DNA from: Macrostomum hystrix
Taxonomy: Eukaryota; Animalia; Platyhelminthes
Assembly: GCA_950097015.1 (NCBI GenBank)
Contig: CATNEN010000025.1
Location: forward strand, 806,001-870,000
Reading direction: 5' to 3'
Length of the DNA: 64,000 bases
Shown here: positions 37,616 through 64,000 of the stretch, one piece after another
Position numbering within the stretch: the stretch's first letter is position 1
How the letters are laid out: every line of letters begins with the position of its first letter
Translations under genes and position numbers: made by a program
The notes under the pieces: generated by a model
Database searches by the model: none
Told to the model about the DNA's origin: nothing
The model's input: only the letters and a program-made list of their open reading frames with translations

Positions 37616-37705
37616 ATGGACGAAAATGAAGAACAGCTTGCCAGGCTGAAAGAGATCATTCGGCACAGTGAAGAGGAACTGAAGAAGAAGGAACACAAAT
37701 ATCAG
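37616..37705 (+). CDS. Golgin coding exon 1 (MDENEEQLARLKEIIRHSEEELKKKEHKYQ)
   Basis: Below the ORF-track cutoff; donor CAG|GTTCAT. Confidence 0.75.
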
Positions 37706-40700
37706 GTTCATATTTCGATTTATGTTGCAAAATTATTCTAAAAATTGACACTTTTTTCCACAGCTACATTATTAATTAGATGAGAACTCCAACCGTTTAG
37801 CTTGTAATCTATTTTTGGCTTTTCATGTTGTTTTCTTTGCATAACCTTTGTCTTCAAGGATGAGATATCAGCTCTGCACGCGGCCAGCGTGTTCAAAGAC
37901 GATCGTCTGTCCCAGCTGAATAGCCAGATTCTCCAGCTGGAGGGTCAGGCGCACGAGCTGCGCGAGAGTGTCGCCGAGCAGCTGCAGGTTGTTGAGTCTC
38001 GGGACGCAGCCATCAGGCTGATGCGCGAACAGCAGGCCGCAGCGCTGCGCCAGAAGGAGGAGCAGTTCGCCGAGAGGCTGGCAGCCACGCAGCGCCACTT
38101 TGAGGACTGCCTGGGCGAGAAGGAGGACGAGATGGCCCGCTTGATGGACACCATCAGGGTAATAAAAAAATAATAATAATTTCAGGAGGGCTGCAGGCTA
38201 TAGCGCACCAAAACTATCATTTGGTCAGAGCGGTTAACGCGTTTGCCTCTCGCACCAAGGTCCCTGGCGAGGCCACATTTATTTTGGGTGCAGGTGCGTA
38301 GATAAGGCTTGGGGCCTTTTCGTTCAATTTGTGCCTTTTAGGGCCAACCTCCAAGGCACAGTGAGAGTGTACACTTGCCTGAAGATGAGAAAGTCAGGGC
38401 AGATATACACACCAGTGTTAGTGGGTGCCTGCGTACATTATCTGGGTGTGTTCTCAGGAGTCAGTGAAATGGGCAAAATTGCCTTCTCGATGGCTGCGGG
38501 TCTAGTGTCACCAAATGATGTGCCGTTGCCCACAGCCCTTCTTCAGTTATTATATTATAATTATATAGTAAATGCAAAAAGAACAGTTTTTCTTCATTTT
38601 TAGCGAAAGCAGGAGGAGATTGCTATGAAAGATGACGACATGCTGATTTTGATGAAGAGTCACGAGGAGTCCGTTAAAAAGTTGTTTAAAGGTAAGTTTG
38701 TTTTTTTTACAAAAGAGTTGTGACTGGTCATTTAGTTAAAGTACATGGGCAAACAACTGCTAAACTTCTCCGCCATTGCGCAGAGGCCAGCAAGCAGAAT
38801 GTGGACGCTGTCTATGAAACTCAGCTGCGCGACTGTCAGGAGGCTCTCAGACAGAAGATCGACCGGCTTAAGGATGCAGAAAGCCAATTATTGGAGCAGC
38901 AGAGTCAGCTAGCCCAGAGAGACTTTGCTGTCAAAGAGCTTAAAAATGAGCTTAATAATTTGAAGGTGAGTTAATAGATTTTATAGTTTTTTTAATGATT
39001 ATAGACAATACACTTGTAGAAGAAGCAATCTTCTACTTTTTCTCTACTTTAAGTAGCAGGCATGCCAAAAGGGTCGAGGAAAAAAATTCAAGACAAAAGA
39101 TAGCGGGCAAAACGGTCCTTTTAAGGTCCATACTTTAGTCAAGTGTAAGTTATTCAAAATGAGGTACAATGATATCATTCAGAGCAGGTATTAAAACAAA
39201 TGACATTTATAGAGAAACTGGTTTTCATTTTATTAGGTGCTTTAATTTCGTGGCTGTAAAGTTATCAAGAAAAATAGCCTTGTAATTATGATCAAGACAT
39301 TTAGTTTGCTAGACTAGCATATTAATTCCCCATTGGGGAGCCTGGAAAAAGCGCACGTAATTCGAAGAAAATATTTTAAAGTCGAAAAGAGAATTAGTTA
39401 TAATAAAGTACTGCTTTCCACTCCACAAAGTTTTTTGTTTATCAAATTTTAATAAAAGGAAAAATGGAAATTCCCACTCCATCTCTCAACAAATCCCCAC
39501 TCCATCTCTCAACAAATCCCCACTCCATCTCTCAACAAATCCCCACTCCATCTCTCAACAAATCCCCACTCCATCTCTCAACAAATCCCCACTCCATCTC
39601 TCAACAAATCCCCACTCTGTCACCCAAAAATCCCCATTCATTCACCCAACAAATCATCACTCTATCTCCCAACAAGTGCCCAATGTATCACCCATTAAAT
39701 CCCCACTATATCACCCAACAAATCCCCACTCTATCACCCAACAAATCCCCACTCTTTCACCCAAAAAATCACCACTCTTTCACCCAAAAAATCACGGCTC
39801 TTGCACCCAAAAAATCACCACTCTTTCACCCAAAAATATCGCCACTCTCATCGCCCAACAAATGCCTACTCTATCACCCAACAAATGCCTACTCTATCAC
39901 CCAACAAGTCCCCACTCTTTATCCCAACAAACTCTCAGTCTATCATCAACAAATGCTCACTCTTTCAACCAAAAAATCACCACCAACAAATCCCCCAAGC
40001 CCCAACAACGCCGAGTCAGTCTGTATTTCAGAAAACCAGGATTCTTTTCTTCCAGAAATCAGTCGTTGACGCTGAAGCCGCTGCCGCGGCGGCCACCAGC
40101 ACCTCGGAGGCTCAGCTGGCAGCCGCCAACGAAGCGGCACGCAAGGAGCTGCAGGCGGAGAGGAAGCGGCATCTGGCTGCCAAGGCCAAGGCGAAATCAT
40201 TGGAGCGGCAGCTAGCTAAGGCCAAGGAGGAGCAAGCTGAGGTCAGTTCGCCTTGTCTGCGTGCTTGTACATCGAGGCTTTTTGCCTAGTTTTAAGGTGG
40301 ATGGACTTATACTACGGTCAATACCTGTACTGCTACCACATATTAGTAGAGACATCTCTCGGTATAGAAATTTAGTAATGTACTCTTGTATTAAAATATA
40401 ATATAGAACTACACCTAGCTCGAAAGCTATTGCGCGGCGCTTAAATAAACTGCGCAAAGGCTGTGTCCAGCAGTTCAGTCCGTGGACTGTGTAGTACACG
40501 ACACCCACCCAATTGTCACCCAGTTGTTAAAAAGGTATCAGCATCAGTTGGTGTAATAAGAGTGGGTGTAGCGTCCCCCTAGTCTATGGACTGAACAGCC
40601 GTACGCAGCCTTCAGATGTGCTGCGCAATAGCTGCGGCAGCGGTTGCACATCTGACTCAATCGGGGCAGGTGTAATTCATTAGCAAATATTATTACTATA

Positions 40701-43700
40701 CTATCATTAATAGTACTATTGCTACTACCTCGCAGGCTGCCAGTCAGTGGGCTCGCGAAGCCGAAGAGCTGCGGTCAAAGGCGTCCCAACTTGAGTCTGA
40801 GCGCAATGGCTTGGAGCAGCGCCTGACTGAACTGCAGACAGCGGCTGCTGCTATTGCCGTGCCAGCAGCTCCGGTTGCCACGGCAACGGCCCCAGCCGCT
40901 GTGGACGATCTACGCGGTGAGCTTCAAGCTGAAAAGAAAAAGCATCTGTCAACGAAGGCGCGGGTCAAGTCGCTGGAGAAGCAGCTGAAGGCGCTGGAGG
41001 CGCAACTGCAGCAGGCCAAGGCGAGCTGTCAGGTGAGTTTTATTGTCTCAGTTGGCCTTTTGTCAAAATAAGCTAAGAGGGGATGATAGGTCTGAGGATC
41101 GAATTTCCTATCGAATTATTTGTATCCTCTGAAAATGACATTTATTGCCCAGCCCATTAAATCAAACAGCTTAACTGTGAAAATGACATTTATGTCGATG
41201 GCTGTAGATCTTATCCAACTCTTTAGATTAAATAACGCATGTTTTCTAACTCTTTAAATACTACCGTCTTGGCAACGTTCGCTTTCTAAATAAAAACTCG
41301 ACCGAGTAATTCAGTATTTTTTGTTTATTGTCCAATTTTGGTCACAGGATTGTTTGTGTGAATTTTTTTCTACTTTCAAGTTACTTTTATGGTTGCTAGT
41401 TAGCTCATTTCGGTTATGGTGTAGTTATTATCAGTTTTTGTACTATTCGCTTTAATATCAGCGTTCTTATTGCAGGACACGGGCTCTGAGAGCAGCCCGG
41501 AACATCAGACAGAGACCAGCGAACTGCAGCAGCAACTAGCAGACCCGACAGAGCCAACTGAATATTCCAAGGCTGTGCGGTCAATGCTGACTAAGAAAAC
41601 TGAGGAGCTGGCCAAGCTGCAAGATGAGCACTCTGAGCTCAAACAGCTGGTCGATCGTCTGGAGTCGGAGAAAGTGCAGCTGTCTGAACAGATTGCTCTG
41701 CTAACCAATTCAAAGCAAAATGCTGAGTCCAACTCGTCAGATTTAAAAAACATTGTGCAGCAACTTGAATCAGAAAAGATGTTGATTGTCGCGGAAAATG
41801 AGCGAATTATACAGGAACTCAGCTCCGCAAGAGCTCTACTAGAAGAGACAAAACAAGTATCAGCAGTGATGCAAATAGAAAATGCAGAACGTTTTGATGA
41901 AATCAGGCAACTGACGAACGAATTGCAACTCTCAAAGGTTGATTATGATGAGCTTCGAAAGCAAATCGATAGTCTGCAATCGGATAAATCCGAGCAATTT
42001 TCTAGCCACAAGGAGCGAATGACAGAACTCACTGAGAAGCTGCAAGTCAGCGAGTCAAGCTCAAATGATCTGCAACAGCAATTGACAGAACTCACTCAGA
42101 AGATGCAAGTCAGCGAGTCAAACTCAAGTAATCTGCAACAGCAATTGACAGAACTCACTGAGAAGCTGCAATCGACTGAGTCAAGCTCAAATGATCTGAA
42201 ACAGCAATTGACAGAACTCATTGAGAAGCTGCAAGTTAGCGAGTCAAGCTTAAATGATCTGCAACAGCAATTGACAGAACTCACTCAGAAGATGCAAGTC
42301 AGCGAGTCAAACTCAAGTAATCTGCAACAGCAAGTTACAGAACTCACTGAGAAGCTGCAATCGACTGAGTCAAGCTCAAATGATCTGAAACAGCAAGTGA
42401 CAGAACTCATTGAGAAACTGCAAGTCAGCGAGTCAAACTCAAATGATCTGCAACAGCAAGTGACAGAACTCACTGAGAAGCTGCAATCGACTGAGTCAAG
42501 CTCAAATGATCTGAAACAGCAATTGACAGAACTCATTGAGAAGCTGCAAGTCAGCGAGTCAAGCTCAAATTATCTGCAACAGCAAGTGGCAGAACTCACT
42601 GAGAAGCTGCAATCGACTGAGTCAAGCTCAAATGATCTGAAACAGCAATTGACAGAACTCATTGAGAAGCTGCAAGTTAGCGAGTCAAGCTCAAATGATC
42701 TGCAACAGCAAGTGGCAGAACTCACTGAGAAGCTGCAAGTCAGCGAGTCAAGCTCAAATGATCTGCAACAGCAAGTGGCAGAAATCACTGAGAAGCTGCA
42801 AGTCAGCGAGTCAAGCTCAAATGATCTGCAACAGCAAGTGGCAGAACTCACTGAGAAGCTGCAAGTCAGCGAGTCAAACTCAAGTAATCTGCAACAGCAA
42901 GTGGCAGAAATCACTGAGAAGCTGCAAGTCAGCGAGTCAAGCTCAAATGATCTGCAACAGCAAGTGGCAGAACTCACTGAGAAGCTGCAAGTCAGCGAGT
43001 CAAGCTCAAATGATCTGCAACAGCAAGTGGCAGAACTCACTGAGAAGCTGCAAGTCAGCGAGTCAAACTCAAGTAATCTGCAACAGCAAGTGGCAGAACT
43101 CACTGAGAAGCTGCAATCGACTGAGTCAAGCTCAAATGATCTGAAACAGCAAGTGGCAGAACTCACTGAGAAGCTGCAATCGACTGAGTCAAGCTCAAAT
43201 GATCTGAAACAGCAATTGACAGAACTCATTGAGAAGCTGCAAGTTAGCGAGTCAAGCTTAAATGATCTGCAACAGCAATTGACAGAACTCACTCAGAAGA
43301 TGCAAGTCAGCGAGTCAAACTCAAGTAATCTGCAACAGCAAGTTACAGAACTCACTGAGAAGCTGCAATCGACTGAGTCAAGCTCAAATGATCTGAAACA
43401 GCAAGTGACAGAACTCATTGAGAAACTGCAAGTTAGCGAGGCAAGCTCAAATGATCTGCAACAGCAAGTGGCAGAACTCACTGAGAAGCTGCAAGTCAGC
43501 GAGTCAAGCTCAAATGATCTGAAACAGCAATTGACAGAACTCATTGAGAATCTGCAAGTCAGCGAGTCAAACTCAAGTAATCTGCAACAGCAAGTGACAG
43601 AACTCACTGAGAAGCTGCAATCGACTGAGTCAAGCTCAAATGATCTGAAACAGCAAGTGGCAGAACTCACTGAGAAGCTGCAATCGACTGAGTCAAGCTC

Positions 43701-46700
43701 AAATGATCTGAAACAGCAATTGACAGAACTCACTGAGAAGCTGCAATCGACTGAGTCAAGCTCAAATGATCTGAAACAGCAATTGATAGAACTCATTGAG
43801 AAGCTGCAAGTTAGCGAGTCAAGCTCAAATGATCTGCAACAGAAAGTGGCAGAACTCACTGAGAAGCTGCAAGTCAGCGAGTCAAACTCAAGTAATCTGC
43901 AACAGCAAGTGGCAGAACTCACTCAGAAGCTGCAAGTTAGCGAGTCAAGCTCAAATGATCTGCAACAGCAAGTGGCAGAACTCACTGAGAAGCTGCAAGT
44001 CAGCGAGTCAAACTCAAATGATCTGCAACAGCAGTTTTCAGAGAAAGAAAAATTATTAAACGATTTAGAGAAGAAGCTGGATTTCGCTCAGCAACGAATT
44101 AAAGAGTTGACTTCGGAATCACATTCATCCCTTCAAGATATGTCGAAGAGAATGGATGAGCAAGAAGCGATTAATCTAAATCTTGAGCGTTGTCTTAACG
44201 TGAAATCGGATGAATTATCATCTCTACAAAAGTCTTTCGACGAGTTCACTGCAGAGAAATGTGCAGAAGTTTCCGAGCTTTCACTTGAAGTGCGTAGCTT
44301 GCATCAAAAGTTAAACGATTCGGAGATTCGCATTTCTGATTTGATTATCTCTTCAAGCAAGCTGCAAGAAGAAGCTGTTACACTGAATCAGTCAATCCAG
44401 GATTTACAGTCACGAAACGAATTTCTTACAAAAGCTTTAGAAGCTTCTGAGAATGAAAAATTCTCCAGTGATCGCGCTCTTAATGCTAAAATTTTAGAAA
44501 GAGATGAAGAAGTGAGTCGTTTTCAATCGTGTTTGGAGGACTTAAAGCTCCAGCTGAATGAAATGAGGTCCACGTCAGAAGCATCTGGAAATGAGCTAAT
44601 GAATAGATTTGAAGAGTGCGACAAAGCCAGGGTTGCAGAGATAAACGAGCTCAAGGGTTTTGTTACGCAAAAGGACGCACAACTGACTGCAGTCCAAGAC
44701 CGCATTGAAAAGCTTAAAGAAGAGCTTGAGTCGAGTCAGAACGAAGTATCTGTGTTAAAGGAGCAGCTGCTTAATTCGACAGAACAAATCAGTTTGCTAA
44801 TCCATGAAAAGAATGATCTAACGGAAGATGCCGTAGAAGCCAAGCGTGTTTTGGAAGAAGCATCCGATCGTATTGAGGAGTTGGAATCTTTAGAACAGAA
44901 ATGTGTTGTATTGCAGCGCACTGTGGAAGCTCTGCAGATCTCTCTAACCTCTTCAGAGAACGAATGTCAGAGTCTTCGTTCGCTTCTACAGACGGTTAGC
45001 GACTCCAAGGGTGACTGTGAAATGCAAATCTGGGAGCTAGAAGAGACGAAAAAGTCTCTAATCACTCAACTTTCCCAGGCGGACGCTGAAAGCCGCGAAT
45101 TGTCAGAAAAGCTACAAAAGTCTGTCGTTGAGCAAATCAGCATTCAATCCGAACAGGCTCACTTGCACAACCAGTTAGATTCTAGTGAGCGCAAGCAGCA
45201 GAAGCAGGCTGATGAAATTGAAGCGCTCAAGCGTAATCTAGATGATGTAACGACTCAATTGGTCAATGTCATTCAACAGCGCGATCGAATCCAATCTTTG
45301 CGAAATGAGGAGGTCGAGGCGTTGAAATCTGAATGCAAAAGCTTGGACAAGCAGTTGTATGAACGAAACCAGGAGGCTGAAAGTATGAAAAGCACGTTGC
45401 AGAAGTTAAGTCAACAGGTAGAAGTAATTGACGATTTGAACCATCAAAATGTTTCTCTTCAGGGTCAACTGGCTGAGGCAAAAGATTCTATCGCTGACAT
45501 TAGTGATGAGAATTCTAAATTGCGAGATCGTTTGCAGGCAACAATTACAGAAAACTCAGATCTGAAAGAGTCCGTAAATACAGTTAGTTATCAGGCAGAT
45601 CAGTGGCATTCTTCTTTAATCAGCCATCAGCGCGAATTAGAGAGCCTACAAAAAACACTGACTTACGCTGAGTCCGAATTCGCTGAGGCGCGTCAGGAGA
45701 ATGCAGGCTTGCAACAGAAAATTATGCAGGCTAAAGAAGAAACTCGTGTCCTCAAAGAGAAATGTGCCAGACAAGAGGAGCATTTGCAGCGTATCGAAGA
45801 TGAAAATGCCAATCTCACTACGCAATGTCGGACGCTAAAACACAATTGCGTCGATCTTGAATCCCATCTTGAATCCATAAAGGCAGAGTACTTTGTACTG
45901 CAAAGAGATCACTCTGCACTAGAGTCCTCAAGTGAGCAACTATCCGCAAATTTCAGTGAGAACCAACTGCAATTAGAGCAGCTGGATGACCAGCTGGATC
46001 GATTAACTTCTGACAAGCAACTGTTGCTTCAAGAGTGCAAGCTTCTTAAGGAAGAAAATCAATCTCTCCACAGCCTCCTCGATTCAGTAAAAGCAAACAG
46101 CAATGAGTGCCAAGAAAGACTGCATTCCTCATTAGAGGAGATTAGATCTCTATCTGACAGTGTGAGTGAACTAAAAGAAAATGAGGACAAGTTGCACGAA
46201 ATTCAACGGAATTTAATTGTGGCCAACGAAAACTTCGAGCTCAAATGTTCTCGCCTGGACGAGGATAATTCTCAGTTGCGACAGGTTGTCGAAGATTTAA
46301 AGTTGATGGTTGAAGAAATAGAATCAAAGCTATCCGAAAAATCTAACGAAGCAAGCAAGTACCAAACGGCAGAGATGTTGCTACTTGCAGAAGTCGATCA
46401 ACTCCGAGCTGAACTTCTCACACGAGAGGAAAAAATTTCCGAGGTAAGTTCCAAGGCACGCCTTAATTCTGACCTATTAGCTCGCATATCTGACAATGTC
46501 GCTGACCTAATAAACGCTACCAGAGAGTGGTCTCTAGAATGTAATTCAACCATTACTGTTGATGTGAGTCCCGGTTGCTCTATCGAAAATTGTATAGAAC
46601 ACATAACGAAATTCGTGTGTTCGGCAAGAAGGGCATCCATGGACGCAAGTACTCAATCAACTCTTCAAAAGCAGAAACTGGAGCAAGTGGAACAAAATCT

Positions 46701-49700
46701 AGCCAAAGCACTAAAGGAGAAGAACGACACAGAAGCTGCTTTAGAATTCACTCGAGACTCACACATTGCTTGCGAAAATAAATTAAAAGACATCACAGCT
46801 AACTACGAAAATACACGTTCAAGATTAGAAAAAATGAAGACAAAAATGAATAATATCATTCAAACCATATCAAATCAAGAAAGCATTAACGCGGAAATAA
46901 CTGCACAAAATGCGGAGCTGAAACAGGCTATTAGCAACTTAGAAACTAGCAAGCAGGCACTTCACAGCGAGCTTACACAAACAGAAAAACAAAAGGACGA
47001 GAAGCTCAATGAGTTACAAAAACTGTTATTCGAGTCACATAAAGCTAATGATAAGTTAACAACAAGTATGTCTGAGCTGAGCGACTCAAAGGCATCGCTT
47101 GAGGAGCAGCTTCGCTCGCTTGGTGAGGCCAAGCAGAAAGACGAGCAGAAGCTCACTCGCGCTTCCGAAGTGCACGAGAAAATGAGCGGCAAGCTAAAGA
47201 AGGTTCTGGAGTCTAACAAGCTTCTCAAGGTCAAGGTGAAGGAGCTTCAGGAAAAAGTGGACGCTCTTCAGAGAGAGATTGACGAGTCCAGTGAATCTTC
47301 AAAATCTCAAGAGACTAAGATCAGTGAGCTCTCCGAAGCGAATTGCAGTCTTGTTGCACAAGTTGACTCAAAGTCGAAGCAGATTGCTGATCTCGAAGAG
47401 TCCGTTGAACAGCAGTCCAACACTATCGAAAGACTGACTACTGAGCTGCACAGCCTGGATTCGGCCAGAGCAAACGTTTCTTCTGAGCTCAGAGCGACAG
47501 AGGAAGCAAAGTCGCAGCTTGAGTCTCGAGTATCTGATCTGCTTGCTCAAAATGAAGGTCTGGAAGAGCAAGTTAGGAGGCTTCGTGAAGAGTCCAGTGA
47601 GCTGCAGTCATCAAAGCAGGCTTTGGACGAGGCAAATGAAGCACTAACAAGAAGTGTGTCTGAGCTGAGCGACTCAAAGGCATCGCTTGAGGAGCAGCTT
47701 CGCTCGCTTGGTGAGGCCAAGCAGAAAGACGAGCAGAAGCTCACTCGCGCTTCCGAAGTGCACGAGAAAATGAGCGGCAAGCTAAAGAAGGTTCTGGAGT
47801 CTAACAAGCTTCTCAAGGTCAAGGTGAAGGAGCTTCAGGAAAAAGTGGACGCTCTTCAGAGAGAGATTGACGAGTCCAGTGAATCTTCAAAATCTCAAGA
47901 GACTAAGATCAGTGAGCTCTCCGAAGCGAATTGCAGCCTTGTTGCACAAGTTGACTCAAAGTCGAAGCAGATTGCTGATCTCGAAGAGTCCGTTGAACAG
48001 CAGTCCAACACTATCGAAAGACTGACTACTGAGCTGCACAGCCTGGATTCGGCCAGAGCAAACGTTTCTTCTGAGCTCAGAGCGACAGAGGAAGCAAAGT
48101 CGCAGCTTGAGTCTCGAGTATCTGATCTGCTTGCTCAAAATGAAGGTCTGGAAGAGCAAGTTAGGAGGCTTCGTGAAGAGTCCAGTGAGCTGCAGTCATC
48201 AAAGCAGGCTTTGGACGAGGCAAATGAAGCACTAACAAGAAGTGTGTCTGAGCTGAGCGACTCAAAGGCATCGCTTGAGGAGCAGCTTCGCTCGCTTGGT
48301 GAGGCCAAGCAGAAAGACGAGCAGAAGCTCACTCGCGCTTCCGAAGTGCACGAGAAAATGAGCGGCAAGCTAAAGAAGGTTCTGGAGTCTAACAAGCTTC
48401 TCAAGGTCAAGGTGAAGGAGCTTCAGGAGAAAGTGGACGCTCTTCAGAAAGAGATTGACGAGTCCAGTGAATCTTCAAAATCTCAAGAGACTAAGATCAG
48501 TGAGCTCTCCGAAGCGAATTGCAGCCTTGTTGCACAAGTTGACTCAAAGTCGAAGCAGATTGCTGATCTCGAAGAGTCCGTTGAACAGCATTCCAACACT
48601 ATCGAAAGACTGACTACTGAGCTGCACAGCCTGGATTCGGCCAGAGCAAACGTTTCTTCTGAGCTCAGAGCGACAGAGGAAGCAAAGTCGCAGCTTGAGT
48701 CTCGAGTATCTGATCTGCTTGCTCAAAATGAAGGTCTGGAAGAGCAAGTTAGGAGACTTCGAGAAGAGTCCAGTGAGCTGCAGTCATCAAAGCAGGCTTT
48801 GGACGAGGCAAATGAAGCACTAACAAGAAGTGTGTCTGAGCTGAGCGACTCAAAGGCATCGCTTGAGGAGCAGCTTCGCTCGCTTGGTGAGGCCAAGCAA
48901 AAAGACGAGCAGAAGCTCACTCGCGCTTCCGAAGTGCACGAGAAAATGAGCGGCAAGCTAAAGAAGGTTCTGGAGTCTAACAAGCTTCTCAAGGTCAAGG
49001 TGAAGGAGCTTCAGGAAAAAGTGGACGCTCTTCAGAGAGAGATTGACGAGTCCAGTGAATCTTCAAAATCTCAAGAGACTAAGATCAGTGAGCTCTCCGA
49101 AGCGAATTGCAGTCTTGTTGCACAAGTTGACTCAAAGTCGAAGCAGATTGCTGATCTCGAAGAGTCCGTTGAACAGCAGTCCAACACTATCGAAAGACTG
49201 ACTACTGAGCTGCACAGCCTGGATTCGGCCAGAGCAAACGTTTCTTCTGAGCTCAGAGCGACAGAGGAAGCAAAGTCGCAGCTTGAGTCTCGAGTATCTG
49301 ATCTGCTTGCTCAAAATGAAGGTCTGGAAGAGCAAGTTAGGAGACTTCGAGAAGAGTCCAGTGAGCTGCAGTCATCAAAGCAGGCTTTGGACGAGGCAAA
49401 TGAAGCACTAACAAGAAGTGTGTCTGAGCTGAGCGACTCAAAGGCATCGCTTGAGGAGCAGCTTCGCTCGCTTGGTGAGGCCAAGCAAAAAGACGAGCAG
49501 AAGCTCACTCGCGCTTCCGAAGTGCACGAGAAAATGAGCGGCAAGCTAAAGAAGGTTCTGGAGTCTAACAAGCTTCTCAAGGTCAAGGTGAAGGAGCTTC
49601 AGGAGAAAGTGGACGCTCTTCAGAAAGAGATTGACGAGTCCAGTGAATCTTCAAAATCTCAAGAGACTAAGATCAGTGAGCTCTCCGAAGCGAATTGCAG

Positions 49701-52700: not shown

Positions 52701-55700
52701 ACAGCAGTCCAACACTATCGAAAGACTGACTACTGAGCTGCACAGCCTGGATTCGGCCAGAGCAAACGTTTCTTCTGAGCTCAGAGCGACAGAGGAAGCA
52801 AAGTCGCAGCTTGAGTCTCGAGTATCTGATCTGCTTGCTCAAAATGAAGGTCTGGAAGAGCAAGTTAGGAGACTTCGAGAAGAGTCCAGTGAGCTGCAGT
52901 CATCAAAGCAGGCTTTGGACGAGGCAAATGAAGCACTAACAAGAAGTGTGTCTGAGCTGAGCGACTCAAAGGCATCGCTTGAGGAGCAGCTTCGCTCGCT
53001 TGGTGAGGCCAAGCAGAAAGACGAGCAGAAGCTCACTCGCGCTTCCGAAGTGCACGAGAAAATGAGCGGCAAGCTAAAGAAGGTTCTGGAGTCTAACAAG
53101 CTTCTCAAGGTCAAGGTGAAGGAGCTTCAGGAAAAAGTGGACGCTCTTCAGAGAGAGATTGACGAGTCCAGTGAATCTTCAAAATCTCAAGAGACTAAGA
53201 TCAGTGAGCTCTCCGAAGCGAATTGCAGCCTTGTTGCACAAGTTGACTCAAAGTCGAAGCAGATTGCTGATCTCGAAGAGTCCGTTGAACAGCAGTCCAA
53301 CACTATCGAAAGACTGACTACTGAGCTGCACAGCCTGGATTCGGCCAGAGCAAACGTTTCTTCTGAGCTCAGAGCGACAGAGGAAGCAAAGTCGCAGCTT
53401 GAGTCTCGAGTATCTGATCTGCTTGCTCAAAATGAAGGTCTGGAAGAGCAAGTTAGGAGGCTTCGTGAAGAGTCCAGTGAGCTGCAGTCATCAAAGCAGG
53501 CTTTGGACGAGGCAAATGAAGCACTAACAAGAAGTGTGTCTGAGCTGAGCGACTCAAAGGCATCGCTTGAGGAGCAGCTTCGCTCGCTTGGTGAGGCCAA
53601 GCAGAAAGACGAGCAGAAGCTCACTCGCGCTTCCGAAGTGCACGAGAAAATGAGCGGCAAGCTAAAGAAGGTTCTGGAGTCTAACAAGCTTCTCAAGGTC
53701 AAGGTGAAGGAGCTTCAGGAGAAAGTGGACGCTCTTCAGAAAGAGATTGACGAGTCCAGTGAATCTTCAAAATCTCAAGAGACTAAGATCAGTGAGCTCT
53801 CCGAAGCGAATTGCAGCCTTGTTGCACAAGTTGACTCAAAGTCGAAGCAGATTGCTGACCTCGAAGAGTCCGTTGAACAGCAGTCCAACACTATCGAAAG
53901 ACTGACTACTGAGCTGCACAGCCTGGATTCGGCCAGAGCAAACGTTTCTTCTGAGCTCAGAGCGACAGAGGAAGCAAAGTCGCAGCTTGAGTCTCGAGTA
54001 TCTGATCTGCTTGCTCAAAATGAAGGTCTGGAAGAGCAAGTTAGGAGGCTTCGTGAAGAGTCCAGTGAGCTGCAGTCATCAAAGCAGGCTTTGGACGAGG
54101 CAAATGAAGCACTAACAAGAAGTGTGTCTGAGCTGAGCGACTCAAAGGCGTCGCTTGAGGAGCAGCTTCGCTCGCTTGGTGAGGCCAAGCAGAAAGACGA
54201 GCAGAAGCTCACTCGCGCTTCCGAAGTGCACGAGAAAATGAGCGGCAAGCTAAAGAAGGTTCTGGAGTCTAACAAGCTTCTCAAGGTCAAGGTGAAGGAG
54301 CTTCAGGAGAAAGTGGACGCTCTTCAGAAAGAGATTGACGAGTCCAGTGAATCTTCAAAATCTCAAGAGACTAAGATCAGTGAGCTGCTTGAATCAAACG
54401 CCATGCTGGAGGTGCAAGTGGTTGCAAAAAGTAAGACAATCCAGGAACTTGAGGAGCTTCGGGTTTCTCTGTCCCGAAGTTTCTGTGAGTTTCAGAACGA
54501 GTTCTCAAAGCAAGAAATGACTTTACAAGAATTAGCAGCATGCAAGTCGTCTCAGGCTGCGGCTATTGAAGAGTTAAGTCTTATTCGCAGCGCCCAGGAA
54601 CGTGCACTCTCTGAGCTTCAGAATTGGACTTCAGCACAAGAAATCAGGGTAAGTGAACTCTTGAGTGAAGTTGTTTTAAAGGACGACCAGCTAGCAAAAG
54701 TTAGTTTGAAAATGCAAGCCTTAGAGGATGCGCTGCAATCTAAACAAAATCGCGTAGCTGAGCTTGAATGCATGATTCAATCATCTGGTATTAGCCAAAG
54801 TGAGCTTGCAAGTCAAGTGCAAGCGCATTCTGTCCAATCTAGGGAATTGTTTTCTTTGCTTACTAAAGCCATTTCTGATTCGAACTGCACGGAGGTTGAG
54901 AGCGAATTCGTATCTCAGAATTTGGAAGAAAGCTTCGACGGCTTGAGAGTTCTCGTTTTACGTTTGTCTGAGCTTAACCATGCATTGAATCGTCGCCTTG
55001 TTGATTCTGAGTCTGTGGTGGTCAAGACTCAAGAAAAAGTTATTGAGCTGAACTCTGTGAGAGCGTCACTTGAGAAATCTCTGTCAGATCTGCAGAAATC
55101 TGCTGTAAGCCAAGAGGAAACCATTTCTCAGCTTCAAGACGTTAACTCTAAACAGAATAAGAAAATTTTTGAGTTGCAGGCAATCCGAGCCGCTCATGAG
55201 AAAGTCATTGCTGAGCTGCAGGATTCAAACACTTTTCAGTCGACTGAGCTGAGAATTATGTGCGATCGACTGCACGAGTCAGAAGAAGCGAAGCATCAGC
55301 TGGACCATCAAGTGATGAAGTTGCATGAGACGAGTGAGATTTTTTCTCGCAAATGCGACGATTTGACAGAATCCAAACGCGCACTCGAAGAGATTGTTGA
55401 AAATATGACGCAATTGCGGATCGCTGACGAAGTGGAACTAAGCAAGGCTAGCAAGAGATGTGAAGACCAATCGCTGGAATTAAAATGTGCTTTAGAAATA
55501 ATCGGCGAAAGGAATTTGAAAATAACGGAACTAAATAGACGCGTTGAAGACAATCAAAAGAGTGCCTCGGTGCTGCAGGAGAAATTGGGGCAAAGTAAGC
55601 GGCAAAGCGAAGAATTAAAAAGCATTGTATTTGGGCAAATGAAGGCCATTTTAGAACTGCAAGACACAAATAGCGCTTTGGAAAAGTCAATTTCGGAGTA

Positions 55701-58700
55701 CGTAGACATCATTTATTCGCAGGAGACCCAGATTTTATTGATGCAAAAGGCTAGCTTTGTGCAGGAAGGCACTGTCTCGAGCCTCAAGGATGTCATCTCT
55801 GCATTGAGGAGGGCTATAGCAGAGCTGCAAGACACTAATTCTGTCCTGGACGAGCAGCTGACGGAATTGCGAGAGCGAAAAAGTGGTTTGACAATCGAAT
55901 TAAAATGTGCAAATGACAAGGTTAAAGAACTTGATGCGTTGCTGAGTAATGAAGAACTCATAAGAGTGCGACAACTGGAGGCTAGTAATGTAAGTCTAAG
56001 CAGTGAGTTGTGTCACGTTCGCCAAGAAAACACCCACCTAGAGCAGCGCATTAGCAATTATGAAAAGCAAATTATGCTACATCAGGCAGAAAGCACCCAG
56101 CTTTCTAATAAAATGTTTATTCTTAAGCAGGTCTACAAAGATCTAGAGGTTAGAATGGTCAGTCTGAATGTTGAGATTCAGGTGTCTGAAGAATCGACTG
56201 TCAATCTGCAAACAGAAAGCCTGACTTTAAAGGAAACAATTCAGTTTTTGACAAATGAAATTAATAGTTTAAAGGCATCTTGGCGAACTAGCGAGGTACA
56301 TTTTTATCGTTAATTTTACTTTTTAGTTTACGCTATTACGTAATAGTCTAATTAACGTATAGTAACGTAACGTATAGCCTAATTAAGTATAAACCTGTGT
56401 AGGCTCAATAAACCTAATATCTTGCATAACATTGCAATTAGAATTTCTTCTTTTTTTAGGAAACTCCAGCCGATTTTACTGCCAAGATGCAGCTCGCTCT
56501 GACTGAAAGCGAGCAACTTCAGGCCAAAGAGCAAATATTAATTGGCGAGATTGCCGCGCTAGAGGGCAAGTTAGAAGAAGCGGCAGCTGAGAAGGACGAT
56601 TTGACAACGAAGATCAGCACTTTGTCAGACAAGCTCGATGAACTAACATCCTCCAGTACACATCACTCAGCTAACAGGGAGGTCCAATTAGCTGAGCAGG
56701 AAAGCATAACCTCTGAGCGCGACGCCTTGGTTGTGGAAAACAGCCAGTTAAAGGAGAAGCAAGACCAGACCTGTGCGGAGCGAGATCGCATGAAGGAGAA
56801 GTGTGCTCGACTCGTGAAGCAATGCCGCATCTTTAAGGAGGCAGCCAAGCAGGTTCAACAGCGAGCTGACACTGCAGACTGCGAGTGTCAGACTGAGGCG
56901 GAGACCGAGTCAGTAGCTGCTTTGACTGACGCATCAACTGAGACAGAAGCAGCGGTGACTTCGGAGTCGTCATTTGAGCCCGAGAGATCGATGGTGGAAG
57001 CCGGCAACCTCACTGAGCCAAGTGGCGCCGTGTCAGGTGTCTCTCAACAGGAAGTCGAGAGCCTGCTAACTTCAAAGATGTCACTGACGGACGAAGTGTT
57101 CGAGCTGAAGCAGAGGCTCGCGTCATCGGACTCAGCGAGGCTGACCGCAGAGTCCAATCTGGAGCAGGCGATGAAACGTCTGCAAGCAGTCAAGTTGTTG
57201 GCAGAGCGTGTGTCGAGCGGAGAGTCGGCGATTGAAGAACTGCCTGAGCTGGAGACCGTTGCCACCCCAGTTCGAGTCGCCCTGCTGGTAAGAAAATACA
57301 GATTTTTCCTATCGATAAAAGTACTACGATTGCGGTTTTGTGATTTTTTATCGTTTGGACTAACATTAACATCTATCTATTTTTCCAGGGCTCACAAATG
57401 GCTAATAGACAAAGCCCGTTTGGTCTGGAAGAGCTACAGTCAAAGTTGCAAAGCTTGGAAACCGACAGAGATGCTATTTTATTGGACCGTGACACGCTAG
57501 CAAATGAGCATCACAAGATCATTGCAAAGCGGGATGCACTTGCCTTAGAGCGAGACGCTCTGCTCTCAGACCGTGATGCAATCACATCCGAGCGAGACGC
57601 TCTGCTCTCAGACCGTGACGCAATCACATCCGAGCGAGACGCTCTGCTCTCAGACCGTGACGCAATTACATCCGAGCGAGACGGTCTGCTCTCAGACCGT
57701 GATGCAATCACATCCGAGCGAGACGCTCTGCTCTCAGACCGTGACGCAATCACATCCGAGCGAGACGCTCTGCTCTCAGACCGTGATGCAATCACATCCG
57801 AGCGAGACGCTCTGCACTCAGACCGTGATGCAATCACACTCGAGCGAGACACTCTGCTCTCAGACCGTGATGCAATCATTTCCGAGCGAGACGCTCTGCT
57901 CTCAGACCGTGATGCAATCATTTCCGAGCGAGACACTCTGCTCTCAGACCGTGATGCAATCATTTCCGAGCGAGACGCTCTGCTCTCAGACCGTAATGCA
58001 ATCATTTCCGAGCGAGACGCTCTGCTCTCAGACCGTGATGCAATCATTTCCGTGCGAGACGCTCTGCTCTCAGACTGTGATGCAATCACATCCGAGCGAG
58101 ACGCACTAGCCTTGGAGAACGCCCAGCTCATGGAGTCTGCCACTCTGCTAAAGGAGAAGCAAGACCAGGCCTGTGCGGAGCGAGATCGCATGAAGGAGAA
58201 GTGTGCTCGACTCGTGAAGCAATGCCGCATCTTTAAGGAGGCAGCCAAGCAGGTTCAACAGCGAGCTGACACTGCAGACTGCGAGTGTCAGACTGAGGCG
58301 GAGACCGAGTCAGTAGCTGCTTTGACTGACGCATCAACTGAGACAGAAGCAGCGGTGACTTCGGAGTCGTCATTTGAGCCCGAGAGATCGATGGTGGAAG
58401 CCGGCAACCTCACTGAGCCAAGTGGCGCCGTGTCAGGTGTCTCTCAACAGGAAGTCGAGAGCCTGCTAACTTCAAAGATGTCACTGACGGACGAAGTGTT
58501 CGAGCTGAAGCAGAGGCTCGCGTCATCGGACTCAGCGAGGCTGACCGCAGAGTCCAATCTGGAGCAGGCGATGAAACGTCTGCAAGCAGTCAAGTTGTTG
58601 GCAGAGCGTGTGTCGAGCGGAGAGTCGGCGATTGAAGAACTGCCTGAGCTGGAGACCGTTGCCACCCCAGTTCGAGTCGCCCTGCTGGTAAGAAAATACA

Positions 58701-61700
58701 GATTTTTCCTATCGATAAAAGTACTACGATTGCGGTTTTATGATTTTTTATCGTTTGGACTAACATTAACATCTATCTATTTTTCCAGGGCTCACAAATG
58801 GCTAATAGACAAAGCCCGTTTGGTCTGGAAGAGCTACAGTCAAAGTTGCAAAGCTTGGAAACCGACAGAGATGCTATTTTATTGGACCGTGACACGCTAG
58901 CAAATGAGCATCACAAGATCATTGCAAAGCGGGATGCACTTGCCTTAGAGCGAGACGCTCTGCTCTCAGACCGTGATGCAATCACATCCGAGCGAGACGC
59001 TCTGCTCTCAGACCGTGATGCAATCACATCCGAGCGAGACGCTCTGCTCTCAGACCGTGACGCAATCACATCCGAGCGAGACGCTCTGCTCTCAGACCGT
59101 GACGCAATCACATCCGAGCGAGACGCTCTGCTCTCAGACCGTGATGCAATCACATCCGAGCGAGACGCTCTGCTCTCAGACCGTGACGCAATCACATCCG
59201 AGCGAGACGCTCTGCTCTCAGACCGTGCTGCAATCATTTCCGAGCGAGACGCTCTGCTCTCAGACCGTGATGCAATCACATCCGAGCGAGACGGTCTGCT
59301 CTCAGACCGTGATGCAATCACATCCGAGCGAGACGCTCTTCTCTCAGACCGTGATGCAATTACATCCGAGCGAGACGCTCTGCTCTCAGACCGTGACGCA
59401 ATCACATCCGAGCGAGACGCTCTGCTCTCAGACCGTGACGCAATCACATCCGAGCGTGACGCATTGGCCTTGGAGAACGCGCAGCTCATGGAGTCTGCCA
59501 CTCTGCTAAAGGAGAAGCAAGACCAGGCCTGTGCGGAGCGAGATCGCATGAAGGAGAAGTGTGCTCGACTCGTGAAGCAATGCCGCATCCTGAAGGAGGC
59601 AGCCAAGCAGGTTCAACAGCGAGCTGACACTGCAGACTGCGAGTGTCAGACTGAGGCGGAGACCGAGTCAGTAGCTGCGGCTGGAGCTGATGCAAGACCT
59701 GTGACTGCTTTGACTGACGCATCAACTGAGACAGAAGCAGCGGTGACTTCGGAGTCGCCGTTTGAGCCCGAGAGATCGATGGTGGATGCCGCGACTGAAA
59801 TAGATGTCTATGATCTGGTGGAGTGGCAATGTCTCTGTGCGGCTATTGAAGCAGCTGGTCTTAGCCTCGGCGACATCGGCCTTTCATCTTCGTTCGCTTT
59901 ATCATCGTTCACTGAAATCTCTGAGGTTATTCGTCTCCTTGCTGCTGTAAGACATTTTCTGAATTGTTAATTGTCATTTCACAGAGCCAAATTGTTTCGC
60001 AAAGCTAAATTCTGACCTCCCTAAAACGCAGAGCATGTCCGGCCAGCGCCAGCAACTGGCGGACATTAGCGAGCGTTGCGAAAGCCTAGAGCAGACCATA
60101 GCCGAGAAAGAGGAGTCCCTGACCGAGATGATGGAGAGACTAGAGATTGCCAACAAGCGGGCTGCGGCTGCCAACTCTACACCGGCTCGTCCTGGCGCTT
60201 CCGTGGCCAGTCGTCAAGTGGAGTGCGACCTAACCCAGCCGTTAATTGGCGAATTGGAGGCCACCCTGGCTAAGCGGGACGGTAAAATTGCCGCCATGGA
60301 GCGGGACAGCCGAGAACTAAACCGCAAGCTGGAGTCGCATCTGCAGACTATGCGACGAATGGAGGCCAGACTGCAGTCCTCTAGTCGGCTGCTCCGCGCT
60401 CGGCTTGTAGATAGCGCCGAAGCTGAGCGGCTCGTTGTTGAGGTTAGTGAGGGATTGATCTAAGGTAAAATTACCGACTGGGACTAACCTGTGGGATAAC
60501 AAGATCTTAAGATTTAAGCTCTCAGATAGTTCTTAATTTCTGAAGTGTTTCCAATTATTTTTAAACAGGTGGAATCGCTGTTTGCCCAACTAGACGAAGC
60601 CGAAGAAGAGGTTAGCCGTCTGCGACTGACCCTGCGCGATCGCGACAATGAGCTGCTCCGACTGGCCGACCAGTTGCGCGTTGAAAGCGAAGCGAAGCGC
60701 ATTGATTTGGCCACAATGCGCGAACAGGTGCGACTGTACGAAGCTGAGCTGCGTCGTGTGCGCTCCGACCTGGACGCCAAAGACGAGCTACTGGCGCTGG
60801 CTCGCGAGACCGCCTCGATGTCCACTGTCGGCGATGATGCCGAAGAAGCTGTAGACTCAGTCGATGCCAGTGGCGGAACTAGTTCTAAGCGAGGACTGGA
60901 AGAGTTAAGCGTAGAGCTGTCAAATGCGAAGAATTTAGTTGAGTCGCTGAATAGCGAGTTGCAAGACTCAAAGCTGTCGCGCGAGGCATTGAATGATGAA
61001 CTAGCCGAAGCTAGAGGAGCTATTGACCGATTGACAACCAGTCTGAGCGCTGCAAAGTTGGAACTGAATGAAAAGTTAACACAATTTGAAGCTGCTAGTG
61101 ACAAACTGCGCTCAGAACTGTCCATTACTAGTCGAGATAATAATATGCTCAGCGATGAACTCATTGAAGCTAAAAACGCGATTGACCGTTTAAATACCGA
61201 ATTATTTAACGCGAATGAAAATTCAGTTGTGACGGAGCTTCGAGCTGAATTGGCATCGACCAGAAAAGAGAAGCTGGTTCTTAGCGAGGAGTTGACCAAG
61301 GCAAATGACGAGCTTGACAGCTTGACGGCTGAGTTGGCCAAAGCTAAGGAGGATATGCTTAGCGAATCCAATGAATTTAGACTCACTATAGAAAAGCTGA
61401 GCAATGAGTTGAAGGTTGCTGCAGAGGACAAGCAAATGCTTAACTACCGATTTTCTGAAGCGAACAGTGTGATTGACAGCATAAGAGAGAATCTGGCAGC
61501 TTCCACACACGCTAAAGAAGCTTTGAGCGGCGAATTAGCTGAAGCTAAATTGTCGATTAGTCAATTAAACGAACAATTAGACATTGCTCACTCATCGCTA
61601 ATCAGTAGGGAAGCAGGAAAGCACGTTGTCTCTACTGAAAGTAGTTCCACTCAGACAGAAACGTTCGCAGATTGTGAAGACGGCCGCGAAAGCGAGCGCT

Positions 61701-63430
61701 TACTCGGAGCTAGTCGTGATCCTGACAACGACGGTAGCGATGAAGCTACCAGCCTGCGCAACAGGCTGGCCGAGAAAGAACGCCTGGAGCTACGGTACAC
61801 CGCACTGATCAAGAAGCTGCGACAGCAGCGCCAGGAGACTCTGCAACAGCATCGGCGTCAGCTGGCTGAAGCCGAGACTGAGACGGAAGCGCTTCGTCGG
61901 CGTTTGGAGGCCACCGAAGCTGAGCTAGTGTCAGCTCGAATGTCGCTGGCTTTGACACCGCCCCCGCCGCCCCTGCCGCCAGCCGCACCAGCCGCCGCAG
62001 TTTCCGAGGCCGAAGCCGAGCTTCAATCCCTGCGAGCGGTGCACTCAAGGTGCCGCGGCCAGCTCGATCAGGTGCGAGCCGAGCGGACCCGCATCCAGCA
62101 GGAGTACGATCGACTGCGGCGTCGGCTAGACGAATCGCCAGCCATGTCGCCTCCTCCGCCATTGTTACCTAGATCACAATTGTCGCCCTCGCCGACGCCT
62201 CCGGTGCAGCATCCTCCGCCGCCGGTTCCTCCTCCGCCTACGCAGCTTCAAATTTTGCAGTCAGAAGCTGCGGCAGCTGCGGCAGCCGACGATGAGGTTC
62301 TCACTCTGCGCTCTGAGAACGAAGGCTTGCGTTTCAAAGTTAGCGTTCTTGAGACCAAAGCTAAGAAAATGGAATTCAGATTAAGGGCCGAGCGAGACAA
62401 AATTGACAAGCTTCAGGTAACTAAGAGTATATAAAAATGTGAATACTGTTTCGCTCGAACGTTAATTACTTATACGTTAATAAATTTCTAGCACCGACTG
62501 GACGAGAAGGACACCGAGCTGGACCAGCTGGTTGATAAACTGCGCGCTAGCCGAGCTCAACTAGAATCGGAGAGAAGCCGTCGGCTCGGCGAGGCTAAAC
62601 GCCTCAGCACCGCTCTCGAGGCCGAAGAGGCGCGCGCCGGTAAACTGGAACGACGCCTTCGCGAGGGCAGCGCTGAATCGGCGGCGGCCGTTCTAGCCGA
62701 AGAGGCGGCTGCAGCTCGCGAAGCCAAGCGTCAGACTGAGCAGCGCCTGATGGCCGAGGCGGCTGATCTGCGCGGTCAATTAGACGAATTGGCGGCCGAC
62801 AATCGCGAGTTGCGCAATCGTTTAGAAACGGCAGCCGCTCACGGCACCGGCCTCGGCGGAGGCGTCATCAGCGGAGCCGACTGTTCCGAGTGTCGACGCC
62901 TGCGCGAGGCGGTTCGCGTACTTGAATCGCAGCAGACGGCGCGGCGACGGCGGGCAACCAGCGAGGCCAAGTCTGTAGCCACGGAGCCGTTGCCGCCTGT
63001 CGCCGAGGCTGCCAGCCAGACTGGCCCCGAGGCGGACGACGCCATTGAAGATGTTGACCTGCTTCGGAAACGTTTGAATGAACTCGAGTTGGCTGCGGTC
63101 GAGTGCGAGACCCTCCGTGCCCTGGTGAAACAGCTGGAGGAGTCGGCAGCAGCTGCGGCCACTTCGCCGCAAACGCCTACAGTAGTTGATGAAGCTTCGT
63201 CGGCATCGCCATCGCTGTCAACAACGGAGGACTCCGTGATTATTCCGATGCTGCTAGCTGCCGATGAGCAGTCGGTCTCGGCAGCAGCAACTCCGCTGAC
63301 TTTAATTCGGCGCCTGCGTCGCTGCCTTGTGCCGTGGCGGTCTGTGCGGCTTCGGCCGAGTGCGCGCAACGCCGCTCTGGCTTATCTGTGCGGCCTCCAC
63401 TGCCTGCTGCTGTACTTCCTGCTGCTGTGA
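37616..63430 (+). CDS. GOLGB1: Giant giantin/GOLGB1-like tail-anchored coiled-coil golgin, ~7,480 aa; join(37616..37705,37859..38158,38604..38691,38784..38965,40056..40241,40736..41032,41476..56295,56460..57287,57389..58687,58789..59946,60032..60442,60569..62416,62492..63430)
   Basis: ATG 37616 has an in-frame TAA upstream. All 12 introns are GT..AG with compatible phases; 22,446 nt is divisible by 3. The protein is heptad-rich E/K/L/Q/S throughout with no signal peptide. The extreme C-terminal TM ARNAALAYLCGLHCLLLYFLLL* has the Y-x4-H motif of giantin/golgin-84/CASP and no lumenal tail (giantin-like). N-terminal EQLARLKEIIRH recalls the giantin N-terminus. Orthology is by motif recall, not by search. 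Confidence 0.75.
37859..38158 (+). CDS. Golgin exon 2
   Basis: Acceptor tcttcaag|GAT; in frame with ORF 37889; donor AGG|GTAATA. Confidence 0.85.
38222..38560 (+). mobile_element. SINE family A copy in golgin intron 2 (plus an antisense 3'-end fragment at 38168-38210)
   Basis: Collinear homology; TTA-rich tail. Confidence 0.85.
38604..38691 (+). CDS. Golgin exon 3
   Basis: Acceptor catttttag|CGA; RKQEEIAMKDDDMLILMKSHEESVKKLFK; donor G|GTAAGT, phase 1. Confidence 0.8.
38784..38965 (+). CDS. Golgin exon 4
   Basis: Acceptor gcgcag|AG completes Glu; donor AAG|GTGAGT. Confidence 0.82.
39465..39990. repeat. Minisatellite, 23 bp (ATCTCTCAACAAATCCCCACTCC), decaying 3'
   Basis: ATCTCTC at 39481, 39504. 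Confidence 0.88.
40056..40241 (+). CDS. Golgin exon 5
   Basis: Acceptor cttccag|AAA (an in-frame alternative AG lies 24 nt upstream); donor GAG|GTCAGT. Confidence 0.78.
40405..40505 (-). mobile_element. SINE family B 3' fragment
   Basis: Reverse complement AGTCCACGGACTGAAC...CAGCCTTT...GCGCAATAGCT. Confidence 0.65.
40510..40660 (+). mobile_element. SINE family B, 5'-truncated copy
   Basis: GGACTGAACAGCCGTACGCAGCCTTCAGATG identical to 6198-6228; upstream part matches the CORE end. Confidence 0.72.
40736..41032 (+). CDS. Golgin exon 6
   Basis: Acceptor cctcgcag|GCT; donor CAG|GTGAGT. Confidence 0.85.
41476..56295 (+). CDS. Golgin exon 7, giant 14,820-nt exon (4,940 codons)
   Basis: ORF 41470..56313 is uninterrupted; acceptor ttattgcag|GAC; donor GAG|GTACAT at 56296. 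Confidence 0.88.
42022..44037 (+). repeat. Coding tandem repeat, 63 bp (21 aa, TELTEKLQVSESSSNDLQQQ[LV]) x 32
   Basis: The first unit starts at 42022 and the 32nd at 43975 (31 x 63 later). Confidence 0.95.
47071..54388 (+). repeat. Coding tandem repeat, 588 bp (196 aa) x ~12.4, near-identical
   Basis: TCTGAGCTGAGCGACTCAAAGG recurs at 47071, 47659, 48247 ... 54127, exactly every 588 bp. Confidence 0.97.
56460..57287 (+). CDS. Golgin exon 8
   Basis: Acceptor ttttttag|GAA; donor CTG|GTAAGA. Confidence 0.85.
57389..58687 (+). CDS. Golgin exon 9 (13 x 42-bp repeat; product of the 1.4-kb duplication)
   Basis: Acceptor ttttccag|GGC; donor CTG|GTAAGA. Confidence 0.83.
57548..58093 (+). repeat. Coding tandem repeat, 42 bp (ERDALLSDRDAITS) x 13
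   Basis: Counted in ORF 57398..58900. Confidence 0.93.
58789..59946 (+). CDS. Golgin exon 10 (12 x 42-bp repeat)
   Basis: Acceptor matches that of exon 9; donor GCT|GTAAGA at 59947 (in-frame alternative GAG|GTTATT at 59926). Confidence 0.75.
58948..59451 (+). repeat. Coding tandem repeat, 42 bp (ERDALLSDRDAITS) x 12
   Basis: Counted in ORF 58798..59970. Confidence 0.93.
60032..60442 (+). CDS. Golgin exon 11
   Basis: Acceptor ctgacctccctaaaacgcag|AGC ATG; donor GAG|GTTAGT. Confidence 0.75.
60569..62416 (+). CDS. Golgin exon 12 (coiled coil + Pro-rich hinges)
   Basis: Acceptor tttaaacag|GTG; donor CAG|GTAACT. Confidence 0.85.
62492..63430 (+). CDS. Golgin last exon with C-terminal TM anchor
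   Basis: Acceptor tttctag|CAC; open and in frame with ORF 62750..63430; ends YLCGLHCLLLYFLLL TGA. Confidence 0.87.
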   Translation, partial: HRLDEKDTELDQLVDKLRASRAQLESERSRRLGEAKRLSTALEAEEARAGKLERRLREGSAESAAAVLAEEAAAAREAKRQTEQRLMAEAADLRGQLDELAADNRELRNRLETAAAHGTGLGGGVISGADCSECRRLREAVRVLESQQTARRRRATSEAKSVATEPLPPVAEAASQTGPEADDAIEDVDLLRKRLNELELAAVECETLRALVKQLEESAAAAATSPQTPTVVDEASSASPSLSTTEDSVIIPMLLAADEQSVSAAATPLTLIRRLRRCLVPWRSVRLRPSARNAALAYLCGLHCLLLYFLLL

Positions 63431-63915: not shown

Positions 63916-64000
63916 TCTATATATTTTTGCCTATTTTCCAAGCTCTTCAACTCTAACACGGTTATCAGTCGTGTAGTGCGATTTCGCTTGACAATAGAAA

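Follow-up and report, generated by a model that had tools for sequence, protein, structure and literature searches.

Does a run of unusually long open reading frames in a flatworm genome belong to a single gene, and if so, at which membrane would so large a product act? The 64-kb stretch analysed here (Macrostomum hystrix, assembly GCA_950097015.1, contig CATNEN010000025.1, positions 806,001 to 870,000; hereafter the window, whose numbering is used throughout) contains on its plus strand an open frame of 4,962 codons at 41425-56310, with GC-rich open blocks on either side, over 37616-63430. A 13-exon model of this interval reads 22,140 nt without an internal stop and encodes a protein of 7,379 amino acids (aa; 825 kDa, isoelectric point 4.8). 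The locus is one real, transcribed and spliced gene. Its product is a coiled-coil rod that ends in a membrane anchor, and we consider it on balance probable that it is a lineage-specific tail-anchored rim golgin, giantin-like in architecture. Whatever goes beyond a tail-anchored coiled-coil protein with the anchor motif described below, we infer.

One gene with a giant exon

Splice sites were first set by hand and later mended from RNA contigs. In the resulting model GT..AG sites of good consensus bound each of the 12 introns, exon boundaries fall in phase 0 throughout with the exception of exon 3/4 (phase 1), and GC content is 41-65% in exons and 27-45% in introns. An in-frame TAA lies 6 nt upstream of the putative ATG. 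A search for further coding exons ahead of 37616, as far as the neighbouring carrier gene, found none in this 2.8 kb, which has 32% GC and contains no coding-like frame. If the genome uses spliced-leader trans-splicing, translation could conceivably start instead from a leader AUG joined to exon 2, since that exon opens in phase 0. At its other end the protein closes with ...AALAYLCGLHCLLLYFLLL, followed by the stop codon at 63428-63430, and no AATAAA was found from there to the end of the window.

Evidence of expression came from four small RNA runs of one 2020 study, which carry ~73% of the sampled words of 54400-63430. Contigs of these runs, mapped to 56150-62149, confirmed five introns in three of the runs (X2-X4), and the four GT..AG joints that link exon 8 to exon 12 (Table 1) were each present in two or three runs. 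No contig was found over 56150-56459, the covered part of intron 7. Contigs beginning at 56460 are preceded by 30 nt located at 55960-55989, after which the genome reads GTAAGT. Because these 30 nt end at 55989, the donor of the giant exon is 55989 and not 56295, and the protein is therefore 102 aa shorter than had been proposed from the sequence, with 7,379 rather than ~7,480 aa. In that sequence-only reading, the giant-exon end and the protein length had to be corrected. A minor alternative donor within the giant exon (Table 1) is in frame and would drop 447 codons; its contig is short and of lower depth.

Towards the 3′ end, contigs cover 60567-62149 and extend further, and one of 3,429 nt (run X3) starts from 59728 and continues for 1,218 nt beyond 62149, reaching about the stop codon. 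The exon 12/13 junction lies outside the RNA-covered stretch, and the transcript of a relative (L001, see below) is continuous over the equivalent point. The spliced contigs support the earlier proposal that the giant exon and the exon encoding the transmembrane segment belong to a single expressed gene; transcripts that never make this join had been set in advance as the outcome that would count against it, and the result came out in its favour. A chance open reading frame was rejected as an explanation on the grounds of the 4,962 codons and the spliced RNA.

Some further observations concern sequence variation and repeats within the transcription unit. RNA contigs of exon 12 differ from the assembly by single bases at 61123, 61443, 61453, 61481, 61521 and 61569, some of these differences being common to all three runs and some run-specific, most simply as allelic variation. 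Intron 4 contains a 23-bp tandem repeat of 22 copies (39468-39983), whose open frames of 200-280 codons mimic coding sequence. A 15-bp tandem repeat of 29 copies (63478-63917) starts 48 nt past the stop codon, in the presumed 3′ untranslated region.

The rod and its internal repeats

Coiled coil had been proposed to dominate the protein, and the periodicity of the refined model bears this out. Glu, Leu, Ser, Ala, Gln and Lys account for 65% of residues and Pro for 0.8%, and Fourier analysis of hydrophobicity gives its top peaks at 3.50, 2.33 and 7.0 residues. Windows of 28 aa with a heptad a/d score of at least 5 include 66% of all residues, and such scores are reached by 32% of real windows compared with 0.4% of shuffled ones. 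Heptads are sparse in several places, among them the exons with the 14-aa repeat, two Pro-rich parts of exon 12 and the final 187 residues. At the unique 3′ end of exon 10 (59650-59946), an expressed, hydrophobic-rich stretch of ~60 residues in mid-rod departs from the heptad pattern and might serve as a hinge or as a binding module.

Much of the rod is recent. Four in-frame tandem arrays total 3,468 aa, equal to 47% of the protein, and very young tandem sequence makes up about 47-50% of its length; minus these additions the protein would have ~3,900 aa. Seven divides each of the unit lengths (21, 196 and 14 aa), and therefore the heptad register is kept with each unit added. Within the 588-bp array the inner full copies are 0-7 nt apart, with several identical, the edge copy is 9-14 nt away, and one site shows near-alternating Arg and Lys. 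Purifying selection on the 196-aa array was considered and rejected, since 8 of the 17 variable sites vary only in the edge copy, with hardly any difference among the inner copies; the pattern shows youth or homogenisation, not selection. Further downstream, 56770-57618 is the same as 58170-59018 with one mismatch (1 nt in 849). Here a 1,400-bp tandem duplication has produced exon 9, of 433 codons, as a chimera of its neighbours.

These repeats also bear on how long the main product is. It seems rather unlikely to us that the gene, though real, yields a main protein far below 7,379 aa, a possibility that would be compatible with the other readings of the protein; such a product could result from arrays or a 1.4-kb duplication that are assembly errors or belong to one haplotype, from skipping of exon 9, or from further introns in the giant exon. 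The near-identity of the 588-bp copies and of the 1.4-kb duplicates makes both hard to assemble, and repeats so similar are likely to vary between individuals. Short-read contigs break inside all arrays, and the array copy numbers rest on the assembly. In addition, the RNA junction contigs fit both copies of the duplication, the exon 8/9 and 9/10 junctions being identical, and so cannot separate the two, and one internal alternative donor (54648) is already present. Against a shortened product, however, the 588-bp copies carry ordered and distinct variants, among them the near-alternating Arg/Lys site, unlike a collapsed or inflated array, and the ends of the arrays in exons 9 and 10 are represented by separate contigs in run X2. 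The segment shared by the duplicates also has 2-3x the contig depth of its unique flanks (X2, X4), contig depth being a poor measure. Together, the distinct variant patterns of the copies and the separate contigs at both array ends mildly support a correct assembly at the repeats.

A fully extended rod had been predicted to reach about 1 micrometre. As an upper bound this stands (7,379 x 0.1485 nm, ~1.1 micrometres). As a reach it was overstated, because no more than about two thirds of the residues score as heptad-regular, Pro-rich breaks interrupt the rod, and rim golgins may not simply project but form bands along the rim, as argued in a recent preprint (PMC11974933). It was overstated also because about half of the length is very young repeat of assembly-based copy number.

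The membrane anchor and its relatives

The sole transmembrane-like 19-mer of the whole protein is formed by residues 7361-7379 (Kyte-Doolittle mean 2.17). Arg-rich sequence lies ahead of it and the stop codon right behind it, and no signal peptide is present. With a single transmembrane segment at the extreme C-terminus and no signal peptide, the protein is therefore tail-anchored; it combines one transmembrane domain (TMD) in its last ~30 residues with a coiled-coil rod predicted to be cytoplasmic. The anchor carries Y-LCGL-H, a Tyr-x4-His (Y-x4-H) motif, which had been noted before and which recurs in the only relative found, P0001. Golgin-84, CASP and giantin have similar TMDs, in which the Tyr is needed for export from the endoplasmic reticulum (ER) (PMC5840792), and they have a central His in common and are TRC40 clients (PMC6633398). 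For CASP, mutation of this Tyr is reported to cost the protein its ER export. The TMD described here likewise appears to combine a conserved Tyr with a central His, as in tail-anchored golgins, with weak statistical support.

When the 312 aa of the last exon were compared exhaustively with 1.84 billion representatives by phmmer, the one protein matched at E <= 0.001 was P0001 (350 aa, E 2e-27, 38% identity); giantin, golgin-84 and CASP were absent from the result. P0001 derives from L001, a 1,107-nt Logan contig of SRR28338165; this transcript fragment, the sole relative found, shares the anchor and contains a Gly run together with a Ser/Ala/Val-rich linker that has diverged strongly. While the anchors of the two proteins keep A-x-A-Y-L-C-x-x-H-x-x-L-L-Y-x-L-L, the preceding 100 residues are almost unalignable. 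The motif of P0001 reads Y-LCAV-H, and this protein likewise ends directly after the TMD. Word-index searches with regions 4330-4962 and 880-1870 of the giant open reading frame against proteins of 2,700-8,700 aa returned nothing at E <= 0.001, and a word-index search with exon 12 returned nothing. Homology to giantin was thus found neither for the C-terminal region nor for the rod among proteins of 2,700-8,700 aa. By these comparisons the gene appears nearly an orphan, with no giantin, golgin-84 or CASP detectably related to it over any long stretch.

Profile comparisons covered the tail and every exon or large piece, and language-model comparisons covered the tail, the last exon and exon 12. 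Among 24,736 Pfam models, the last 30-40 aa matched CASP_C only, at positions 225-245 of 252, which correspond to its TMD (E 0.065-0.12), and no CASP_C domain above the gathering score was found. Golgin_A5 scored at best 18.6-21.1 bits vs a threshold of 31.7, over coiled-coil parts only. Every exon or large piece gave generic coiled-coil cross-matches (PUMA_CC, Tropomyosin, ATG16, ZapB), none diagnostic, matches to WH2 and GAGA_bind stem from the composition of the 14-aa repeat, and exons 2 and 4-6 matched nothing specific. In the language-model (Atlas) comparison of the last 100 aa, CASP_C/Golgin_A5 clusters account for every one of the ten best neighbours that bear a family. With the whole last exon, CASP_C/Golgin_A5 are among the top matches, together with a CCDC136 cluster at 0.87; exon 12 gave scattered unrelated coiled-coil families with ~100 features in common and was uninformative. 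The three tail signals, namely the motif, the CASP_C match and the Atlas neighbours, are each weak and mutually consistent, and with moderate confidence they place the tail in the golgin-84/CASP/giantin anchor class. The part of the sequence-only reading that assigned the anchor to this class is supported by these signals, while the kinship with giantin that it implied found no support in the phmmer and word-index searches.

We read the protein as a tail-anchored rim golgin because its anchor has the Tyr-x4-His signature and the flanking pattern of the golgin-84/CASP/giantin class. Several results weigh against this reading and against the full-length model behind it. The CASP_C match reaches 10-13 bits where the cutoff is 28, Pfam gives no match for the tail of P0001, and the Atlas neighbours of the tail, at scores of 0.81-0.86 with 157-182 of 256 features in common, are leads only. 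Outside the tail, no resemblance to a golgin family was found beyond the generic coiled-coil cross-matches, and the N-terminus (MDENEEQ) contains neither Trp nor an N-terminal Trp-type tethering motif. Introns 1-6, as well as the start codon, are predicted from the sequence. To these are added the broken arrays and ambiguous junctions described above.

The weakness of the tail evidence, including the unmatched P0001 tail, leaves some room for a tail-anchored rod of another membrane, in which the Tyr and His of the anchor are coincidental. The membrane could be that of the nuclear envelope, of the ER or of an organelle of secretory or acrosome type, and the protein would then be comparable to kinectin-like, CCDC136-like or KASH-less rods. 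Both the CCDC136 cluster among the neighbours of the last exon and the generic coiled coil of the remaining protein would be in keeping with such a rod. We hold this to be improbable, at about the same level as the shortened product. The Tyr, the His and their surroundings are kept between two relatives whose adjoining 100 aa are not, the sole Pfam match sits at the corresponding TMD positions of CASP_C, and the ten best family-bearing tail neighbours are all from tail-anchored golgin families. Moreover, no luminal peptide extends past the TMD, so that the protein is not a KASH protein. Giant nesprin-1/2 do resemble it as multi-thousand-residue rods with a C-terminal membrane anchor, but they contain spectrin repeats and, beyond the TMD, a luminal KASH peptide of ~30 aa, whereas the flatworm rod is heptad coiled coil. 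A KASH/nesprin identity was rejected, as the stop follows directly after the TMD both here and in L001; rootletin and CENP-F, both of which lack a TMD, were rejected as well.

Comparison with the three tail-anchored golgins places the rim golgin reading in context. Like giantin (GOLGB1), the flatworm protein is a very long, interrupted and acidic coiled-coil rod with one very large exon, and a C-terminal tail anchor with Tyr and central His at which the protein ends at the membrane. Its pre-amplification length of ~3,900 aa compares with ~3,260 aa for giantin. It differs from giantin in having no detectable sequence similarity, in being 2.3x longer and half young tandem repeat, and in coming from a non-chordate host. 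Golgin-84 (GOLGA5, PF09787) is also a tail-anchored rim golgin with the same TMD signature, and Golgin_A5 is among the Atlas neighbours of the tail; however, the flatworm protein is ~10x longer, lacks the N-terminal Trp motif, and matches Golgin_A5 below the cutoff. CASP (a CUX1 isoform) and its yeast counterpart Coy1 (PF08172) are linked to the tail through the TMD part of CASP_C and through the top Atlas neighbours, which are CASP_C. Here the anchor alone matches, the rest of CASP_C and CUX1_N being unmatched, and the flatworm protein is far longer.

The likeness to giantin raises the possibility of true orthology with the chordate protein, which would make giantin as old as the bilaterian ancestor and imply that its sequence has diverged past recognition. 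The shared architecture (a giant coiled-coil rod, a Tyr/His tail anchor and nothing past the TMD) and a repeat-free length near that of giantin would fit such a history, and coiled coil evolves fast, the sole relative being already at 38% identity. Nevertheless, we judge orthology to be distinctly unlikely. Giantin was recovered neither by exhaustive phmmer with the last exon nor by the word-index searches of long proteins, and the Atlas neighbours of the tail are CASP_C/Golgin_A5 clusters rather than giantin clusters. In addition, giantin is described as chordate-specific (PMC5840792), and it is reported absent from fly and nematode.

If the protein is a lineage-specific rim golgin, as we favour, it would dimerise into a segmented coiled-coil rod and be inserted post-translationally through the TRC40/GET pathway. 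It may then leave the ER and be retained at the Golgi cisternal rims via the Tyr of the TMD and the region ahead of it, where it might act as a tether or as a rim scaffold. A literature search found no paper tying Macrostomum or flatworms to golgins or giantin.

Surrounding sequence and significance

The exons, arrays and splice features of the gene are collected in Table 1.

Table 1. Features of the giant gene in window coordinates; exons 1 to 6 were placed from the sequence
Feature	Position	Strand	Description
Exon 1	37616-37705	+	30 codons; putative start ATG; donor CAG/GT
Exon 2	37859-38158	+	100 codons; GC 0.63; AG/GT sites; phase 0
Exon 3	38604-38691	+	88 nt; phase 1 at its end
Exon 4	38784-38965	+	182 nt; brings back phase 0
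Exon 5	40056-40241	+	62 codons; GC 0.65
Exon 6	40736-41032	+	99 codons
Giant exon 7	41476-55989	+	14,514 nt, 4,838 codons; acceptor predicted; donor 55989/GTAAGT fixed by RNA
63-bp array, x32, in frame	42020-44033	+	21-aa unit (3 heptads); 89% matches
588-bp array, x12.4, in frame	47071-54388	+	196-aa unit (28 heptads)
Alternative donor (minor)	54648	+	G/GTAAGT; phase 0; joined to 56460; 59-nt contig, runs X2-X4
Exon 8	56460-57287	+	276 codons; RNA contigs start exactly at 56460; joint 57287>57389
Intron 8, RNA-joined	57288-57388	+
Exon 9	57389-58687	+	433 codons; chimeric; holds 42-bp x13 array
Intron 9, RNA-joined	58688-58788	+	copy of intron 8
Exon 10	58789-59946	+	386 codons; second 42-bp array (x12); joints 58687>58789 and 59946>60032
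42-bp arrays	x13 in exon 9, x12 in exon 10	+	14-aa unit (2 heptads)
Intron 10, RNA-joined	59947-60031	+
Exon 11	60032-60442	+	137 codons; flanking joints on both sides in three runs
Intron 11, RNA-joined	60443-60568	+
Exon 12	60569-62416	+	616 codons; coiled coil with two Pro-rich breaks; joint 60442>60569; donor CAG/GTAACT
Exon 13	62492-63430	+	312 codons and stop; anchor coded at ~63371-63427

Elsewhere in the window, a multi-exon cadherin gene occupies 1824-11445 (+), with four cadherin domains in its first open block of 592 aa (Pfam E 1e-57) and a transmembrane segment in a later exon. Its last detected coding block is adjoined by a micro- and minisatellite block (11178-13231), which has repeats of SLSYSLSH and FTLL type, is open for 390-680 codons in several frames of both strands, and resembles non-coding repeat more than coding sequence. 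The first coding exon of a mitochondrial carrier gene lies at 34322-34843 (-) (Mito_carr, E 5e-23); this gene is divergent from the giant gene, from which the 2.8-kb spacer of 32% GC separates it.

Giantin is the least understood of the rim golgins and is regarded as a chordate invention. A tail-anchored rod of giantin scale and larger, with the same type of anchor, in a flatworm bears on whether such rods have deep ancestry or arose by convergence from an anchor of the golgin-84/CASP type. Automated gene prediction may break the gene into pieces, and the protein collections searched contain no counterpart of it. It also provides a clear example of a structural protein that was roughly doubled by recent, register-preserving repeat amplification, which opens the question of whether golgin length matters to testing in an animal amenable to RNA interference and transgenesis.

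More tentatively, and less likely than not in our view, the protein may be a non-chordate golgin-type tether longer than any other known, with a length that is now changing by amplification in exact multiples of the heptad (3, 28 and 2 heptads). If this is true, individuals or related species would carry natural length variants of a rim golgin, an allelic series in which the effect of tether length on secretion or on the organisation of the Golgi could be tested in a flatworm that is highly secretory.

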